Source: Podarcis bocagei (taxonomy: Eukaryota). Taken from it: 64,000 bases of DNA. Under the pieces are notes generated by a model. That model was not told the DNA's origin, did no database searches, and saw only the letters and a list, made by a program, of their open reading frames with translations. The translations under genes were made by a program, and so were the position numbers. The stretch lies in NCBI GenBank assembly GCA_964188305.1, contig OZ076892.1. One strand, written 5' to 3'. How positions within the stretch are numbered: position 1 is the stretch's first letter; each line of letters opens with the position of its first letter. Positions 24,797 to 45,996 of the stretch are shown piece after piece.

Positions 24797-27700
24797 AGTT
24801 TGGGCCATCAAGAAGCTGGGAGCTGGGCCCCGCCTGTTACTCACCTTAACAGAGCCTCCAGCTCCTGTTTCACAACACCCACCACAGGTGGCCCACGGTA
24901 GGTGAGGGCAGTGTACATCTGCACCAAGGAGGCCCCTGCGCGGATCTTGTCCAAGGCATCTTGCCCGCTGGAGACTCCACCTACACCAATGATGGGGACC
25001 CGTCCTGGGGGGCAAGAAGAGGCTGCTAGTGGGAGGGGTTCTGGAGTCCCTCCCACCTACATCCCCTCCCTCCCTCCAGCCCGTCTCCTTACCTTGGGTG
25101 AGAGAGTACATCTCGCTGACCAGCTGAGTGGAGAGCTCTCGCAGGGGAGCTCCGCTTAGACCCCCAGCCTCCCCACGAAGAGCTGCACGCAAGGTGCTGG
25201 GGCGGCTCACAGTGGTGTTGGTGACCACCAGTCCATCAACGCCTAACTGGGAAAAAGGGAGCCCAGTCAAGCCTCAGAGCCACAGCCTCCTCCTATGCGC
25301 TGCCCTCCTTCCCACAGCAGTGGCCCTGAAAGTCTAGCCCTATCCCATTCTCACTTTTATTTAAAGGAAATTCATAAGACCACTTGATCAAAGATCTATA
25401 TATTTCCCAAGTAGCATATAAACATAGCTTAAGTTAAATCACAGCTGAAATCCACAGTTCACTAAAAGCAAAGGTATGTAAAGCCACCTCAATTCAAAAA
25501 AACGATAAATTCAATAAATATTTAAAGCCGATATAGGTGACTAAATTACATGTCTGGGTATGCTTGCCAAATGCAATATGGTGAGGGTGCCTGCCCAGTA
25601 TCAAGAGGCAGGGAGTTCCAAGTGCTGCTATGTTCACAAGATTGCTCTTGCGAGGAGTGCAGAGCGGCAGGTGTAAAAGTGCAAGTTCCACAGATGGAAG
25701 TGATCAAAGAGGCCCACATGGGGCAAGGTGATCTCTTAAGGGAGCTGCTCTAGAACAAGGCATAAAAGGCCAAACCAACCAGGAATAATTGAGGCAGCAG
25801 CCAGACATAACCACTCCTGCCCACCCACCCCTGCATCACCTCAGAGACAACACTAGCAATGTCCTGCTTGTCTTGGGCCGTGAGATCTGGAGCAATTTTC
25901 ACCAGTACAGCCGGCTTGTGCTTGCATGCCAAGGCGTCCCTCTCAGCCAGCACCTGCCAAGAAGCACACAGCCGTTGGCCAAAGATCACGTTCACACTGC
26001 TCAGAAGGGCATAAGTTTCACACTGCCCAGAAGGGCACATTATTACAAGCCATGGAGCGCAGCACAACACACCTAGGAGAGGGGAACTGCCCCTGCTATG
26101 AACTAGGGACAGAAGCGGAGCTCTGCAGAGCAGGAGAGGCTCAACAGCAGGATCCAAAGGGCAGGTATGGAAGGAGGGCGAGATAGAAGCAGCCTCCTGT
26201 TGGTCCACCACCAATATCTGGAGGCAAGGCTGCCATACTTATACAAGGTTCTCAATCAGGCATGCACTCAACTCCTGCAGTAGGATTTCTGAACAATGTA
26301 CCAGCAAAGCCCTGGCTTTCCTTTGCCAGGCACTGTTCAATAAATGTGAAATGGGAGCAGCAGGCTGCTTCTCCTTTGCTCCAAGCAGCTGCTGCCCTCC
26401 GCCCAGAAAGCAGGTGCTTAAATGTGCGTCAGAGGCTGCCCTGGCTGCTTACTGGAGGGGACCGAGAGGACAGGTAATGCTCTTGGGCAAGAGACCCACC
26501 TTGGCCAACAGGAGGCGCAGCTCCGCTTTGCCTTGAAGGGCCCGCAGTCCCGGCGTGTTGGGGCTGGAAACATTCACCACCAGGTAATCAGCCAGCGGGC
26601 CCAGCACACGCACACCTGCCACGTAGTCAGCTGCTGCATCTGCAGAGGCCTTGTTCTTGCCAAGATTTATTCCAAGAGGCATCCCCGCTAGGAAGGGAGA
26701 GGATGCACAAACAGAAGCCAGTCAGACAGGGAGGGCCAGAGCAAAGATGACTACTACGTGAGGAATCCCTGATGAGGGGGCAGACACATAAGAGATTTCC
26801 CCAGGGAGAGCACAGGGCCACGGTGGGCCTGTTAGGGCTGGGCAAAAGGAAGCAGCCACTGGCACTCAGGCAGGCACTGCTCCTGACCAGAGTTGCTCTG
26901 GGAAGGGTTCAGGGCAGGATCCAGAACTCCTCCACTAATCAACTGCAACATTATTTGCTCCTTGCCACTCTTCACGTTCCCTGAAAGCTCCTCTCCAGAT
27001 CTGACTGCCACAAGCATGTACTAGCACAGCAGCAATTGGGTGGGGGGAAGAAGGGGGCTGGGATTTTCCATGGCTCATGGGCAGGGAGGACACAAGCCAC
27101 CTCACCTGAGCTGAGCTGACGCTGAGTTTCTTGTCGGGCTCGAAGTCTGTGCTCCACCACTGCATGCCCGTGGCTGTTGAACCCATACCTAGAAAGTGGT
27201 GGACACAGCTCAGGTGAATACAGCTCAGGTGGACACAGCTCAGGTGAATACCACCACCCCTCTCTTCCCCAATGCATCACCTCCTCCTCCACTGCAGTAG
27301 AGGCTTGTCAAAGGCTCACCCTCGCCACCCACCTCTCTTCCAGCCTCCTACCTGTTAATAATGGCCTGGTCCTCTGGCAGCCGGAAGACGCGGGGCCTGG
27401 GGTTCCCCTCTTGGGGCTCTGGGGTGACACTCCCCACCTCCACAAAGCCAAATCCCATCTTGTAGAGTCCATCTACAGCCTCTCCATGCTTGTCAAAACC
27501 AGCAGCCAGGCCAAGAGGGTTCCGAAACCGGCGCCCAAAGACTTCCACTGCCTGGGAAGCCAATTAAGCACCTGTTAACCAGCAGAAAGCCTTAGGCAGC
27601 AGAAGAGACAGGCAAGGCCCCATCCTGTCCCAGGAGAGAGAGGGCATGCCAGGCCCACAGGAAGGGATTGGGAGCAGTAGGATGAGAGGCAGGGCCCAAA

Positions 27701-29158: not shown

Positions 29159-30338
29159 GGCAGCAAAAGGAGGGTGCACATGGGCTCCACTTCCGGCAGA
29201 GAGCCGGAAACTGAGCTACAAAGCGCGCTGCACTATAAACACACAAGAGGCAAAACTTCCGTCTTCTTTTATAGTCTCTCAATTCCCGAGTTTAGGGGCA
29301 GCCTCGATTAGATTCTGCCTTCCCCCCCGAAATGATCCCAGCAGGGCTGCAGATCGAGCGCTCAGGGGCAGCCGAAAGCCGTGTGCATACCGAAAAGTTG
29401 CCTTTTACAGTATTTAAAAACCGCTCGCATTTCCCATGCAAAATAAAACCCTTTTAATGCAGCTTCGCTCTCTTTGGTCCAGTTTGAATAGTTGCCCATC
29501 TTTTTTTCGCAATGTTGTGTCGGGTGCTAAGACTTCGCAGAGTGATATGAAAAGAAAATGATATCAACAACGGAAGAAATATTATGGGCTGCCCGAAAAA
29601 GTCCTTATGGACCCCAGCCCCATATACAACCCGTCTCCCGACCCAGAAATCGCAGGTGGGGCTTTACCCCACCGCCATCATCTCCAAGTCCCTTCCTCCA
29701 GCCAACCAAGCAGGACCGATCTCCGGGACCCCTGTTCCCCAGGCTGCCCCTTCCTGGAAGGGGCGAGGCAGGCCGGACAGACGTGAAGGGAGTTGGCCAG
29801 CATGAAACGAGAGAGGGAGAAACAGAAGCTCCCTTTGATTGGCTGAAGAGGCACAAGAGACAACGCGGGAGCATCTGGCAACTGCTGCAGATGATCCCAC
29901 CCCCCACCCCCCAGCCGTCGGGGCATCTTGATCCCTCCCTCTGGTGACTTCGCACGTGCAGCGCAGCTGCAGCAGCAACCATCACCCTAGAAACCCCCTG
30001 CCAGAGACAGGGGTCTCGGCCCTCGTGTTCCGTCCTCTATCCTCCCCAAGTCCGCTTTCTCTGCCACTGTCTGTTAGAACCTGCCCGGCTGCCCCCTTGA
30101 TTTCCCTGGGCAAGCAGCGCTGCGGCGGAGGGCGAGCTGCCCATAGCCTTCCTTTCCACCCTCTGCACTTTGTGGGCCTCCAGGCAGAGGAGTGAGCAGA
30201 GATCGCCCCGCTGGGACCGGGACGGTGCTGAGACTACAGGGTCCCAGGCTCTGAGCCAGCGCTGCCCTCCGCGCTCCCCGCTCCTGTCCCGCCCACCGAC
30301 TACGTCATCACTTACGCCAACGCCCCCTTCCCGGCGGG
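29159..30338. promoter_or_regulatory. Divergent DHODH/TERF2 CpG-island promoter region
   Basis: 1180 bp between opposing ATGs. ETS CACTTCCGG about 29188, ATTGG about 29838, CACGTG about 29953, GC box about 30289, CRE-like TACGTCA 30301. Confidence 0.7.
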
Positions 30339-33300
30339 ATGGCGCGCGGGAGAGGGAAGATGGCGGGCGGTGGCCGTGGAGCGTCTCTTGCTGCGTCGCC
30401 CGAAGGAGCCGCGGAGGCTCGCGAAAAGGCCTTGGAGGAGACGGTGAACCGGTGGGCCATCCTCTTCTACGCCCAGCGGGCCCTTCAGGCTTTCCGGGCC
30501 GGCCGCAGCCAGGACTTTCGCCAGCTGCGGGACGTCATATACGGTAGGGAGACCAGTTTGTTTTACGAAAGGGGCATTTGGGGAACATTCTCGCTGGGTA
30601 AAGGTATTTCCTGCTAAGGAACGTGAGTGTAAATAACTAATAATAATTTTATTAGTTATACCCCGCCCTTCTGGCTGGGTTTCCTCAGCCACTCTGGGCG
30701 GCTCACAGCACATATCAGAACATACTAAAACATCAAACATTAAAATATGTCACGTAATAGCCCTGGTTCCACTTATGTCACTGTTACTTATTTACATTTA
30801 TATATTACATTTAATAGTCATTAGGTGTTTTCATTTAAGAAATAATGAACCTAAAGCAACTTAAAATATAATACAGCCTGTGTCCCTGGAACGTTTGTCA
30901 TTTGCCTTTAGAAATTAAGGGAAATAATAATAATTTTTTATTTATACCCCGTCCTTCCCGGTTCAGAAAACCGGGCTCAGGGTGGCTAACAAATTTAAAA
31001 CAATTGTGATACAACAAAAAACAGCACAAAATACAGTATAAAAGCATGAATAACAATAAATTCAAAGTTCTAAAATAAATTTGGGGGGGAATCCGTCCAA
31101 TAATGATTTTTAAAGAAAATGCACAAAGTACAACTAACCAACAGCACAGAACCCAGAAGGAAGGTCTGAAAACAGCCAGCTGTGATTCTCAGGAAGATGG
31201 TTAGGATACATACATCCCCCCTTAAATGAATGCTTCCTAAAGCCCATCACAGATGGTCAGGAGAAGGGTTAGGAACACACACACACACACGCCGCCGCCT
31301 TTAGCCTCCTAAGTACCTGAAAACTTCAGAGCCCTCTTGAAATCTATTTCAAATTGGAGAATGTTGATGTGTGTATTAAGAGATTGAGTTTAATCTAGCA
31401 CCTTTGGAGTGTAGTTCTAAGAAACTCAACTACTGTACTTTACCATTCATTTTCTTACAGTAATTACTTCCGTGTGTCTATAAATATTTTAATGTTTCAA
31501 TATTTTAATGTTGTATTTTAATTTTGTTTTTAAGTTGTAATCATTCAACTGGTTTTTATTATTGCTTGTTAGCTGCCCTGAGCCCGGCCTTGGCTGGGGA
31601 GGGCGGGGTATAAATAAAAATTATTATTATAAATAAAATCTGTACATACTGCATTTCTGCCCCACAAAATGGGAGCTCCAGCAAGATCACTCACCACAAA
31701 GATTAAGACACTAAAAAAAAAGTGTGTGTTTGTGTATATACAGATACTAAAGGATATTGTAGATCACACACAAAAAAAACAAGCAAATGCAAAGTGACTC
31801 CTGAGCCAAAGGGCATGTTGGGATGAAGCTGTCTGTCTGTATATGGCCAGGGATACAAGATATGGGACAGGGCTTTGGTGCCCTGGCCCAAACCTCGTTA
31901 CACCTGGTTTGCTGAACTATCTGATTTTGCTTAGTGGCTGTTTTGACTCTCTTGTTCTTCTCCAGCTGTGCTTGCAAGGCCCCTAGTGCTAGAGAAACGC
32001 ATTGGCATTCAGCTGCGGATTATCCAGCTTCTGTCTAGGATTGAAGAAGATTGGACCATTGATACCAAGACCAAGTTAACACCTCTTGAATATGCCCTTG
32101 TTCTTTTGGATAAGATGAAGAATGAATTGGACATAGACATTGATATAATAGAAGAAATAAGAAAAAAAATAAAGGAAGCAGTAAGTGTTAGCATTTCCTC
32201 TTCTGTAGGCACTGATTACTGTTTCTCAGCCTAGTTAGTATGAGGACAGCTGTCTTAAGTTTCAAAATGCAGTATATTTAGGAAAGGGTTTAATTAAGGT
32301 GCTAATTCAATGCCAGGATGAACTCTTGCCTATTTTTCTCCATGCTTAAATTGGACTTTAAAATAAGTTCACAAAAGTTAATAGAAGCAAGGAGGCAAGA
32401 TTCCTATATGCTGGGATGAAATGAGAGAGAAATGTCTCCTCAGAGTGCCTGAGTTTATTGGAACTCAGCATGTTTTGAAAACTTGTTTCCTTCGGGGGCA
32501 ATCCAGGAAAAGCTGGCTTCTTGACTCTCCTGAGGCATACATTATTTCAATGTTGTTAGCCTACAGACTTTAAAGTAACTTGCCTTACTTGAATTTTTTT
32601 TTAAATTCTTTAATAAGTGGTCTAATATTACACAATGAAAACACACTGGGTTGAAAATGTGAAGCAGATCTAGAAAACTGCCAGAGGGATATCTCTCGAA
32701 CAGTATCTTCTTAGATTAGGAACATTCCCCCAAAGTCTTCCTTGCAAACCATTATTTTGTCTTTCTTCTCCAGGCTGTTATAACCTGTCTAAAAAACAAA
32801 GAATATGAACAAGCCAACAAGATCTTGAGGAAACACATGTCAAAGGACCCAAGTTCCCAGGTGAGCTTTCAGCAGGTATGAGTTCATGTCGCTGTTGTTG
32901 AAATGTGCCTCTTATAGGGTCATTTCACTGCAAAGCAGAATCATGGTTTGTCCTTCCCACATTCTCCAATTCAGTGAGTGTCTTAAATACTTGAGAGTTT
33001 ATTGTCCCCCTTACGCAATGAGAAAAATTGCATCCACAAGCAGCCCATGTTGCTACAGATTGTGGTCCACATCTCTAGTCATCATTACTTTCATGCATTT
33101 TTGACATTACCTAGACTGCTCTGGTGGCTTGGCTTGTTTTGTTTAAACTTCTAATGACTGCAAAAAATGCTTTTATCTCTGCCCTGTGCTGCAATTTGCT
33201 TGCAAGTACTGAAAAACATTTCCCCTTGCTTAGAAAATGAGATCGATGTTCCAGAGCATTATCCGAGAAAAAAACTTCGCTCATCCAGCCATCTGGAACT

Positions 33301-36300
33301 TCTCCTATAAAGCTTTCCAGCAGAGAATACTTCTGTATTTAGAAAGCTGCTTGAATGACTCTGAGCCCTTTCTCTTAGAGGTAAGCAAGGGTGTGGAGTG
33401 CTGCTTGATTGAGATGTGGGATGTTGTAGTGGGAGCATAGCTTAGTAGTTGAACATATACTTTGCATGCAGAAGGTCCCAAGTTCAATCCCTGGCATCTC
33501 TAGGTAGGACTGGGAATGTCCCCTGCTTGAAACCCTGGAGAGCCGCTGTCACTCAATGTGTGGTGATAGGAAACTATATGAACCATTGGTCTGGCTTGGC
33601 ATAAGGCAACTTGCTTTCTTCATATATTTCTGTGTGTTGCTGGAGCACTTGATATCACCCACATTGCCACAGCAGAACTCTTGCCGTCTAAACACTGTGA
33701 TCAAAAAAGTACATTCAGCACCTGAGGCTTAAGACAGAAGCCTCCCTGGCCAAACTGTTATGTGTTTGGGAAATATTTTTGTGAAGAGCAAAGTACCCCA
33801 CAGCAGAACAGCACAGGGCTCCAGTGTCACATTTGACATATATCAAGCTTGTAACCTGACAATGTTTTGGACTAGCAATTCCCAACAGCTCCAGCATCAT
33901 GAGGCTGTGCTGACTGGGGCTTAGGGGAATTGTAGGTAAAGCATCTTCAGGGCACCAGCTTGGGCATGGCTGCTGTATATAACTAGAAAAAATAAAATAA
34001 AGTTGAGAAGTGTTCTCTAGTAACTGTGTTCACATTCTCTGTTTAAGATGGCAAAAAGGGATTCGGATGATCAGATAGAGACCAGGCTCAATCCTTTGGA
34101 AATGGCCAGCAAGGAGGAAATGGTGAAAGAAACCTCAGAGGTGGCGGCAGCAGATAAACCTGAATCTGTAGGAAGATCTGATGAGACTTTGGAAGAGCCC
34201 CGGCCTGAGGCAGGGCCTAGAAATACAGTGGAAGAACAGCCAAAGTCTCTGGAGGGAGGCCGTGAGACAGTTGCAAGGCCTTTGATGGAGGCAACGGGAG
34301 CTGTTTTGGAGCTTGCCAAAGTGGTTGATGAGTGCCAGGCAGCTTCAAAGCCAGAAGAAGAAACCAGTGGAGCTGCAGAGCCTGCTGTGGTTGCTGTTGC
34401 CACTTTCTCAGCAGTTTCCAGTGACTCTGACAGGTTAGCAGCCTATGGCCTCTTACAGTTTTGACTCCCTTTGCCATGCTGGGCAGATGTTTTGCCATAC
34501 AACTTCTGGCTCTCAGCACTCAGACTCAAATTGCACCTGCTGCCAGGGGAGCAAGGTCTTGCGGGTGAGGTCAGCAACATAAGTTGGCAAACCTTGTGGA
34601 GCAACCTTCTGATGTTTCTTTATTTTGCAGATGCTCGCCTAAGAGGATGGGTTCGTATGGGTTTTCTACTCTGAGGGATGCTTTCAAGATCCTGTCCAAT
34701 TCCCCAGATGCAGATGAAGAGTTTTCAAAACTGGACAAGTTGGACTGGACTTTCCCCAAGCCATGTTTGGCTTCTGATTTCCACGCAGCCAAGTGCCAAA
34801 CGGAGAAGAACCGTGCTGCCTCCAGGCCGCACCCCAGTGAATGCTCAGTGTCCATAAGCACACTGGTTATGGGGTCAGAGATCTGGAACCCCCCAACTTC
34901 CTGCCGAGTTCCATCCAAGAGACCCGTGGCAACTTTGGTTGTCCGGCCTGCACAGCCCCAAATACCCACCCAGCCTCATGATACCTCCCGATATCCCAGG
35001 TAAGAAGTTATGACTGCTGTGGGGTCTGCTGGGGAACCGGCATAGCATGAGGCATTTGGTGCAACTTTCACCTTTGCAAGGAATCCATTAGAAGGCCTTA
35101 GGCCTCAGCCCAGAAGCTCCAAGGAAGGCAAAAGTGGTTTGCAGTGGTAGGGTTGCATCGCTGTGCATCTTCTCCCCCAGCTAGTAGAAGCAGGTTGCGA
35201 GAGAATCTGGTTCACATACCTTGTCTTAATTTTTATTACTCAGATTGCAAAGATAGCAGAATTGACAATACGGTCTCTGGCCCCATTAAAGGTTGCTAAA
35301 CAAATTTATTGTGGCAGAAACATCTGCGCCGGACTCTGCTTTGTCAGATGCCTAGAATGTTAGCTTCAGTTGCCAGACAGAAGGTAGAAAATGTTATTTC
35401 TCTCCCCCCTTCCTCCTTCCGTCTGTACCAAGGATAAGGGTTTGTGTTTCTGCCACCAGCTATTTGCTCATATTTAAGCTGCCATAGGTCTCTGCAGTGG
35501 TGTGTTTGCTGGGACAAATTAACCTCGCTCCTTGTCTGATACTTAACCCAGCATCTCCATAATCCTGGTTGTGTGTGGCATTAATTGATGCAGCTCAGTC
35601 CAGTCCCATCTCCTTGTGGGGTAGGCCTTCCTCACTTGTGTTTCTCTGTTCCATTCAGATTAGCAAAGAGGAGACTAATTTGTTTAAATGAGGATGAAGA
35701 AAAGGAGGTCTGGAGTGATGAGGATGAACTTTTTGGTAAGCAGCTAGTATCCTGTATACAGTATGCAGAGGGATTTGGGGGCACAGCTCTTGGATCAGAA
35801 AAGTAAAATATTTGGACTGCCTACTCGAAAGTGCACAGCAGCAGCACTGGCAAAATTATTGCCGTTTGCCTCAGACTGGCTTCTTGTTCTGCATGATGCT
35901 CAATTGTTGCTCCACGCACTCTTCTAATTAAAGCACCTGTGCAGTTTTGATGGCTTCTCACATTGCATTACCCAGTGACATCACAATTTGGGGAAAAACA
36001 CTGCCAGCATGGCAAGCAAAGAGAACTGTTAACTGCGGTCCTTCAGGAGGCTTGCTTAGGCAATACCCAGACTAGCTAAAGGCAAAACTCTCAAAACCTG
36101 GTAAACATCTTGCAAAACAAAGTGATCCATTTTGTGAACTGTGCTAGAATGAGATGGCAACTGTGAGTGAACATGGATGACTGTTTGCCACATAGTTTAG
36201 GGTTGCCAGATCTTGAAGAGCAAAAAAGAGGACAGCCTGAGCCAGGGAAGGAAGTGCACCCACATTCTTCTTTTCCCAGCTTGGGCTGGCGGCAGCAGTG

Positions 36301-37551
36301 GTGTGTAGAGTTGGCCAAGCAATAAATGAATAAATAACCCCTCCCTACAACCCCGGACATGTCCTTTAAAATGTAAAAATCCCCCTGGATTGGGCCTGTT
36401 GGCCCCCCAAAAGAGGACATGTCTGGGATGCCCTGGATTTATGGCAACCCTAACATAGTTCCATCAGTACTGTAGTTGACTCTACACATCATGCCAAGGG
36501 CTGGGTGGAATTTGACCACTACCCTGGATTTCTGATGAGGTGCAGTAGTGGTAAAACCTCCCAACTGCTGAGCCAGTAGCAATAACCAGCTTACCGAGTG
36601 GTTCCATCCATCCCATAAAGTTTGTAAATGAATTTGTGTTTCAGAATCAAAGGAAGAAGGCAGCAGCAGCATCAACACTTCCCTCTTTGGTTCGAAAAAG
36701 AAGGTAACCAAGCCTACACCCAGTCTGGAGCTGAGCACTCCAGTGGGGAGAAATAGGCCTGCCTTGACAAGACCCCTCTAAATGGAGGCCAGTTGATGAG
36801 GACCCCCTCCCAAATGAAAGAACTGATGAAATCCCCATTAATGGGAACATAGAAAGCTGCCATATGCTGAATCCTGGTCCGTCTAGCTCAGTATTGTCTG
36901 TGCTACAGGGTTTCAGTCCAGGTGTCTCTTTCGCGGCTCTACCTGGAGATATCACAGGTTTGAAGCTGGGATCTTCTGCATATTCAACCACTGGACTAAG
37001 GGGCCTTTCCTAATTAATTAAATAATCAAGGGTCTTGGATACCCAGGTGTTTCAAAGAAGCCTGGGCAATCTCAACACATTATATCTGCTATCTTTGATG
37101 GCCTCTTCAACCACACTGTAAGGTGGCAGAATTTTATTTTTATTACCCACATATTGCAGAAGAAGGACTAAGTGTTCCACCAAGTTGGGTTTAATGTCTT
37201 GAAATATGGGCTGGATATTTGCCTGCTGTGAGTTACTGAGCTACATCCCATGTCAGTGGCAATCCTCTGTTAGCAACAGCCATGGAACCATCTCCAGAGG
37301 GTGGGGTATCTGTCGTTCTGTCATGGGGACAAGGGGCAAGTTTTGCAGCACTTGATGGTTGCTCATGAGAGCCTATGCCCTCTTCTTTCTAGATCTGGAC
37401 TTCAGAGGAGTCTCAGTGGATTAAGGAAGGCGTGAAGAAGTTTGGGGAAGGGAGGTGGAAAGCCATTTCCCAGGCATTCCCCTTTAAGAACCGCACTCCT
37501 GTGGCGATCAAGGACCGATGGCGGACGATGAAGAATCTGGGGCTCTTGTGA
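30339..37551 (+). CDS. TERF2: Telomeric repeat-binding factor 2 (TRF2, shelterin), about 567 aa
   Basis: 9 exons, 1704 nt: 30339-30543, 31966-32180, 32774-32860, 33234-33380, 34048-34433, 34631-34999, 35659-35735, 36645-36703, 37393-37551. TRFH domain ([25 protein letters not shown]), RAP1-binding-like [12 protein letters not shown]...FSKLD, TIN2-binding-like SISTLVM, Myb/telobox [21 protein letters not shown]...[15 protein letters not shown] at 37876. Confidence 0.95.
30636..30745 (-). mobile_element. L2-like LINE/SINE 3' tail; related copies near 30925-31000, 31570-31630 and 54682-54920
   Basis: Shared TTTATT...ATACCCCGCCC...CTGGCTGGGTTTCC..AGCCACTCTGGGCGGCT...AAAACATCAAACATTAAAA sequence recurring within the window. 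Confidence 0.6.
33430..33620 (+). mobile_element. tRNA-derived squamate SINE (Squam3-like); related copies near 36860-37005 (-), 44635-44800 (+), 56060-56240 (-)
   Basis: A-box/B-box-like head GCATAGCTTAGTAG...AGGTCCCAAGTTCAATCCCTGGCATCTC. Confidence 0.55.
36198..36452. mobile_element. hAT-type MITE in a TERF2 intron
   Basis: TIRs TAGGGTTGCCA / TGGCAACCCTA with a perfect 8-bp TSD ACATAGTT (36190-36197 and 36453-36460). Confidence 0.88.

Positions 37552-42173: not shown

Positions 42174-45996
<3,823 letters not shown>

Follow-up and report, generated by a model that had tools for sequence, protein, structure and literature searches.

TRF2 binds several accessory factors through a docking loop of its TRFH domain, and experiments that uncouple it from Apollo, SLX4, MCPH1 and NBS1 have relied on one residue of this loop, F120. 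The window analyzed here (one 64,000-nt stretch from the lizard Podarcis bocagei) raises the question of what has become of this docking site, since its TERF2 gene encodes the region in a single 215-nt exon whose product is four residues shorter than the human sequence and carries Ile at the position of F120. An earlier note on this DNA had explained all of this by one imprecise intron loss in this lineage, and had suggested a rewired docking interface. We asked whether the exon is genuine, how the four residues and the intron were lost, and what the change could mean for docking.

The TERF2 gene of the window

The features that we identified are collected in Table 1. The translation of exon 1 agrees with TERF2 of P. 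muralis (P0001). The 215-nt exon is bordered by the acceptor ctccAG and the donor GTAAGT, is open in frame from 31968 and encodes 71 residues (VLARPL...KEA). In a phmmer search against PDB chains, all 71 residues aligned with human TRF2's TRFH domain (3bua, 1h6p and 4m7c; E ~4e-8), and the sole gap was one of four residues after RIEE, facing human GENL. The best match of this product was P. muralis TERF2 (P0001, UniRef A0A670IM68; 100% identity, E 5e-33). Over residues 1–218, the TERF2 of the window differs from that of P. muralis at five positions and from that of P. lilfordi at eight, as befits a Podarcis-like lacertid near to, but distinct from, the sampled P. muralis.

The TRFH domain was recognized by Pfam PF08558 (E ~1e-14) in P. 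muralis TERF2 (P0001) and in P0139, the Rap1-binding motif by PF16772 (TERF2_RBM; E 2.7e-16) at 34584-35003 of the window, and the C-terminal Myb/SANT telomeric DNA-binding domain by PF00249 (E 7e-15). Upstream of the Myb domain, ORF 35585-35803 holds an acidic motif around a conserved Trp that was matched by eye only to the iDDR, as defined by Myler et al. 2021 (PMC8653790). About 2.4 kb upstream of TERF2, a DHODH exon occupies the opposite strand, which places the two genes head to head, and a TMED6 exon lies downstream. The TRF, TERF2_RBM and Myb domains, together with DHODH upstream and TMED6 downstream, thus identify the gene in the window as the syntenic TERF2.

Two further observations concern the TMED6 region. 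The Sceloporus TERF2-TMED6 read-through models, to which the TMED6 exon was compared, are named TMED6 isoforms by NCBI; ORF 42198-42599 resembles, by eye only, the signal-peptide/GOLD start of TMED6, and had neither a Pfam match nor a match to the Sceloporus TERF2-TMED6 model. A (CA)n/(TG)n microsatellite is located at about 44040-44080, between TMED6 exons.

Table 1. TERF2 features, RNA joints and neighboring exons in the window. Read counts are given for the two RNA-seq runs (X23 + X24).
Feature	Position	Strand	Details
DHODH exon	27351-27563	-	Pfam DHO_dh, E 3e-23
TERF2 coding exon 1	30339-30543	+	ATG at 30339; 68 codons + 1 nt; donor GTAGGG; RNA joint
RNA joint	30543>31966		GT..AG; 8 + 29 reads
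Fused 215-nt exon	31966-32180	+	Squamate exon 2 (84 nt) + exon 3 (131 nt); product is TRFH helix 3, loop L34 and helix 4
Former exon-exon junction and loop codons D-W-T-I-D	32049-32063	+	Human D117-C118-S119-F120-D121
RNA joint	32180>32774		GT..AG; 18 + 16 reads
87-nt exon	32774-32860	+	Sequence and RNA joints
RNA joint	32860>33234		GT..AG; 13 + 17 reads
147-nt exon, TRFH domain end	33234-33380	+	Sequence and RNA joints
RNA joint	33380>34048		GT..AG; 5 + 15 reads
Hinge exon	34048-34433	+	RNA joints 33380>34048 and 34433>34631
RNA joint	34433>34631		GT..AG; 6 + 19 reads
Rap1-binding-motif exon	34631-35003	+	Start is RNA joint; 35003 is the ORF end, not a mapped exon end
Myb DNA-binding domain coding stretch	37393-37548	+	Pfam Myb_DNA-binding; exon limits unmapped
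TMED6 exon	44278-44409	+	61% identity with Sceloporus TERF2-TMED6 read-through models over their TMED6 part

DNA and RNA reads across the 215-nt exon

We compared positions 30200-35100 with the DNA contigs of two studies (X1 and X7) and with two stranded RNA-seq runs (X23 and X24). The contigs span the 215-nt exon with 0 gaps (X1 over 31861-32216, X7 over 31671-32636), and inside the exon, at RNA depths of 20 and 34, no joint, indel or base difference was present among the rows listed in the comparison. The 215-nt exon is therefore genuine and expressed, with neither an assembly collapse nor a hidden intron. In these respects the earlier note read the DNA correctly: its intronless exon is spliced as predicted in both RNA-seq runs and lies in gap-free contigs, the reads across 32040-32060 show no collapse among the rows listed and no gap in the contigs of either study, the fusion point that it placed at 32049/32050 falls within the Asp codon 32049-32051, and the 87- and 147-nt exons that it listed next agree with the RNA joints.

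The idea that the exon stems from a collapsed assembly, from a retrocopy of processed type or from a pseudogene, and is not part of a working TERF2, deserves mention because extra TRF2-like copies do exist in lacertids (see below), but we give it next to no credence: the flanking introns are present and are spliced in the RNA-seq data, the frame is open, all domains are there, the gene occupies its position between DHODH and TMED6, the DNA contigs of the two studies agree, and three other assemblies display the same structure.

A common set of coding positions sets all four read sets apart from the window (30441, 30476, 32817, 33242, 33355, 34065-34156 and others), which indicates that the assembled individual belongs to another lineage or species than the sampled runs. 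The differences in exon 1 include T35A and Q46H, and at 30441 and 30476 the reads show the P. muralis residues.

In one of the RNA-seq runs (X24), 14 reads leave exon 1 at the donor 30543 and run on as CTGTGCTTGCAAGGCCC, departing from the exon 2 sequence (..ACTGTTCTTAAA). This continuation had no convincing match within the window, and the reads may stem from a paralogue transcript or be noise due to short overhangs. Contig depth reaches 1e4-1e6, with many loose ends, at 30528-31675 and 33316-33643; these stretches are interspersed repeats within the TERF2 introns, and a tRNA-like head (..GCTCAGTGGCAGAGCA..) suggests that the repeat near 33460-33500 is a SINE.

The docking loop across vertebrates

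A phmmer search of the full library with the 215-nt exon product gave 17 matches, of which nearly all align without the four-residue gap; among them, the human-type loop was seen in the green turtle only. Among the representative matches, the 1494-residue repeat protein P0004 was set aside as a low-complexity chance match. For a wider comparison, named TRF2 proteins were drawn from ~190 clusters (two word searches with alignments), and alignment columns were counted for 29 squamates, comprising geckos, skinks, a cordylid, a teiid, an amphisbaenian, lacertids, anguimorphs, iguanians and snakes, and for 12 turtles, birds and mammals.

Residues G113-L116 were absent from all 29 squamates and present in all 12 turtles, birds and mammals. 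At position 118, Trp was found in 29/29 squamates and Cys in 12/12 of the others, while position 120, which was Phe in each of the 12, was occupied in squamates by Ile (21), Thr (5, with Thr in geckos), Val (2) or Met (1). The motif GENLDC[TS]FD was shared by the 12 turtles, birds and mammals, and G-x-x-L-D-C-x-F-D was kept in the tuatara (P0156; RIAEGENLDCTFD), the frog Phyllobates (VEEGDDLDCTFD) and the coelacanth (INEGQNLDCCFD). Tuatara, frog, coelacanth, turtles, birds and mammals all keep the loop motif, which is thus conserved across sarcopterygians. As judged from these alignments, the short loop is a squamate synapomorphy that arose after the split from the tuatara, and its presence in 29/29 squamate species compared speaks against the earlier note's placing of the change in this lineage.

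All species compared share one phase-1 starting position of exon 3, which makes the W/T/I of the window unambiguously homologous to human C118/S119/F120. The loop codons are colinear (turtle G/AT TGC ACC TTT GAT, skink G/AC TGG ACC ATT GAT, with a slash marking the exon boundary here and below), and TGC to TGG (C118W) and TTT to ATT (F120I) are single-base changes at the same exon 3 positions. Relative to human, turtle and bird, then, the alignments and the phase of exon 3 bear out that exactly GENL is missing and that the three residues read W/T/I, as had been proposed.

Two sets of gene models with unusual loops were discarded. An Anolis-like model with an extra DENK (P0049, MetaClust; EEDENKDWTVD) was treated as a faulty old gene model, this insertion being absent from the Anolis locus (L001), and the Varanus Ensembl models (P0011/P0067, UniRef; GECGE, EEGECGEPTEQ) are contradicted by the NCBI Varanus model, which reads DWTID. 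The odd loops of P0049 and P0011/P0067 are probably due to mis-predicted splice sites at the exon 2/3 junction. In our searches of the literature, no paper describing the squamate TRF2 loop turned up, and the text of a shelterin survey that places the docking site in vertebrates only mentions no squamate exception (PMC8653790).

Loss of the intron between exons 2 and 3

We fetched ten TERF2 loci to compare the junction across squamates, turtle and kiwi. In the turtle Terrapene (..GAG GAG GGA GAG AAC CTA G/GTACGA; AT TGC ACC TTT GAT) and the kiwi Apteryx (..GGT GAG AAC CTA G/GTGGGT), a long loop is encoded by exons of 96 and 131 nt with the intron present. These are the ancestral exon sizes that the earlier note had put forward for human; we saw them in turtle and kiwi instead, the human side of our comparison consisting of PDB protein chains and papers. 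The outgroups also behave as that note would have them, with Terrapene and Apteryx keeping the intron and tuatara, turtles, birds, mammals, frog and coelacanth keeping the long loop.

Gekko, Tiliqua, Elgaria, Anolis and Crotalus display a short loop with the intron still in place (0.47-1.19 kb; ..GAA GAA G/GT..; AT or AC TGG ACC ATT GAT). Their exon 2 measures 84 nt and their exon 3 measures 131 nt, and the intron is of phase 1, within the Asp117 codon. Their coding sequence over the junction and their short loop are as in the window; the difference is that they keep this 0.5-1.2 kb intron, whereas lacertids and Rhineura lack it. The window, Lacerta agilis, Rhineura floridana and the Zootoca TRF2-like copy all combine the short loop with an absent intron (..GAA GAA GAT TGG ACC ATT GAT..), and the junction of the window, GAA GAA G/AT TGG ACC ATT GAT, equals the joined exon ends of Tiliqua, Elgaria and Crotalus with no indel.

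Since five squamates with an 84-nt exon 2 still have the intron, the 12-nt loss is older than the intron loss, and since 84 + 131 = 215 exactly, the intron loss was precise. A single deletion in this lineage that took the intron and 12 coding nt together, thereby deleting GENL, would satisfy the sum 96 + 131 - 12 = 215 and would explain why the missing residues adjoin the former junction. However, the shorter exon coexists with the intron in five lineages, and the fused exon is the exact sum of the two squamate exons, which makes such an imprecise loss very improbable. What stands of the earlier note on this point is that the intron of other amniotes is absent here; the imprecision does not, as the intron was still there when the 12 nt disappeared. 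On the evidence of these junctions, the loss of the intron is a real and precise event that antedates the species, and the loop change is independent of it.

The loss is common to lacertids and to one amphisbaenian (Rhineura). Its node is only bracketed, at the ancestor shared by Lacertidae and Amphisbaenia or possibly deeper in Lacertoidea, the squamate DNA compared being that of lacertids, Rhineura, Gekko, Tiliqua, Elgaria, Anolis and Crotalus. Lacertids and amphisbaenians are usually placed as sister groups, and intron loss is rare in vertebrates. Two independent losses, one in Lacertidae and one in Rhineura, are improbable by parsimony, given this placement and this rarity, and all other sampled squamate lineages retain the intron. 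On the other side, a single amphisbaenian and no teiid were sampled, and the identical junction is not evidence of common descent, because precise losses leave identical junctions.

As in precise intron losses known from other eukaryotic genes, the junction in the window equals the spliced mRNA of its relatives, the coding sequence is unchanged and the adjacent introns are kept; here a single internal, 5′-proximal intron is gone, not a 3′ block. Precise intron loss can proceed by cDNA-mediated recombination or by microhomology deletion between ..AG/GT and ..AG/, and the sequence of the window is compatible with either.

Fusion and loss in the TRF2-like paralogues of lacertids

Paralogues annotated as "TRF2-like" occur in Zootoca (P0006, locus L008; XP_034956995), P. 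muralis (P0163; "TRF2-like X2"), P. lilfordi (P0002) and Lacerta (P0221). The copies that cover the region (P0006, P0163 and P0002) also have the fused exon and the short loop, which implies that they were duplicated after both losses, or converted. The Zootoca copy P0006 differs in that it has Phe in place of the Trp and lacks another two residues farther along, and it gave no Pfam match to the Rap1-binding motif.

Order of events

We propose that the locus was shaped in two steps. The first took place on the squamate stem, after the tuatara split and before crown squamates, when the 12 nt that closed ancestral exon 2 (codons G113-E114-N115-L116) left the mRNA and the intron stayed. Either the 5′ splice site moved to a latent GT within the Gly113 codon, or 12 nt beside the donor were deleted. 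C118 to W and F120 to I (T in geckos) arose through single-base changes. In the second step, which we place in the last ancestor common to Lacertidae and Amphisbaenia or possibly deeper within Lacertoidea, the 84-nt and 131-nt exons were joined by the exact excision of the intron that had separated them, producing the 215-nt exon with its coding unchanged. We hold with high confidence to the two events, their order and taxonomic spread, the expression of the exon and the retention of the TRFH fold (see below).

To compare the two routes of the first step, we examined the intron starts. The exon tail of the kiwi reads GAG GAG G/GT GAG AAC CTA G/GT, in which the Gly113-Glu114 codons, G/GTGAG, constitute a latent donor. 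GTGAG begins four of the five squamate introns, and when the start of the Tiliqua intron is set against the kiwi exon tail, 9 of 12 positions agree. The GTGAG starts weigh little in favor of a donor shift, because GTGAGT is also the donor consensus. Intron starts set against turtle and kiwi exon tails at two alignment offsets gave a mixed picture, with Tiliqua and Elgaria favoring the shift and Anolis, Crotalus and Gekko not doing so. A splice-site shift and a 12-nt deletion thus appear about equally likely.

Fold and docking groove

We modeled the TRFH domain of P. muralis with AlphaFold2 (pLDDT 85, pTM 0.81); in the model, helix 3 ends at RIE and is followed by a 12-residue loop, with helix 4 starting from PLE. 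The top matches of this model in Foldseek were complexes of the human TRF2 TRFH (TM 0.90, rmsd 2.0 A, 55% identity), with TRF1 ranking below them (TM 0.63-0.79). In the model, the TRFH fold is kept despite the short loop, and it is the fold of the human and mammalian TRF2 TRFH structures (3BUA, 3BU8, 4M7C, 5WQD and 7C5D), which represent the same gene by domains and synteny.

In human TRF2, F120 stacks on the proline of Y/H-x-L-x-P peptides (PMC7672075, PMC4334113), L101 and R102 flank the motif tyrosine, which hydrogen bonds to S98 and E94, and R109 and D81 form further bonds (PMC7672075). F120A abolishes the binding of SLX4 and MCPH1 (PMC4334113, PMC7672075). These papers support the earlier note in assigning the docking residue F120 to the loop. 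Of its groove residues, human TRF2 shares D81, E94, L101, R102 and R109 with squamates: L101, R102 and R109 are found in 29/29 squamates, D81 in 28/29 and E94 in 26/29, and all five are kept in the window. The loop-flanking D117 and D121 are kept as well. What sets the squamate domain apart is that loop L34 is without G113-L116, that C118 is an invariant Trp, that F120 is Ile (Thr, Val or Met elsewhere) and that S98 is not conserved. An aromatic residue at position 120 is missing from the window, where the homologous codon 32058-32060 encodes Ile, and Phe occurs there in 0/29 squamates. The squamate pattern is [DN]-W-x-[ITVM]-[DN], with the Trp two residues before the lost Phe position.

The retention of D81, E94, L101, R102 and R109 leads us to infer that the groove still works. 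We regard it as an even call that squamates possess a working groove under a lid four residues shorter, with the Trp probably taking over the stacking on proline. Because S98 is not kept and geckos have Thr120, docking may have become weaker or different instead of being preserved. Carried further, squamate TRF2 might have lost Y-x-L-x-P docking at this site altogether, with Apollo or PNUTS reaching telomeres by another route or surface. In human, the F120A change is enough by itself to abolish binding (PMC4334113, PMC7672075), and all squamates compared lack the Phe and have the lid four residues shorter, with S98 not kept. Even so, D81, E94, L101, R102 and R109 hardly vary, and the strong conservation of the new loop D-W-x-[IVT]-D over ~200 My speaks for a function that was retained. 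We consider a complete loss of docking rather unlikely, though it is the leading functional alternative.

With respect to binding partners, Myler et al. 2021 (PMC8653790) place the docking motif in Apollo and PNUTS of amniotes, and in NBS1 of placentals only, MCPH1 of primates and SLX4 of haplorrhines. On that account, the motif is specific to mammals or primates in SLX4, MCPH1 and NBS1, and Apollo and PNUTS alone would be relevant in a reptile; among the loop partners that the earlier note had listed, Apollo stays and the other three drop out.

Implications for squamate telomeres

A functional rewiring of the squamate interface is plausible on the residues compared here. Our more specific proposal is tentative, and we would put it somewhat short of even: that squamates re-engineered the docking lid for TRF2 accessory factors by removing four residues on the stem, perhaps through a splice-site shift, and by replacing the stacking Phe with an upstream Trp. 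If this is true, the recruitment of Apollo and PNUTS to telomeres in lizards and snakes would use another binding geometry, together with a co-evolved motif or another set of partners. The intron loss, for its part, is an ordinary event, yet it offers a clean phylogenetic marker uniting lacertids and amphisbaenians. Squamates number ~11,000 species, and a whole order without F120, with a shorter lid and with the groove kept, would represent a natural experiment on the TRF2 docking site and on the evolution of the contacts between shelterin and its accessory factors.
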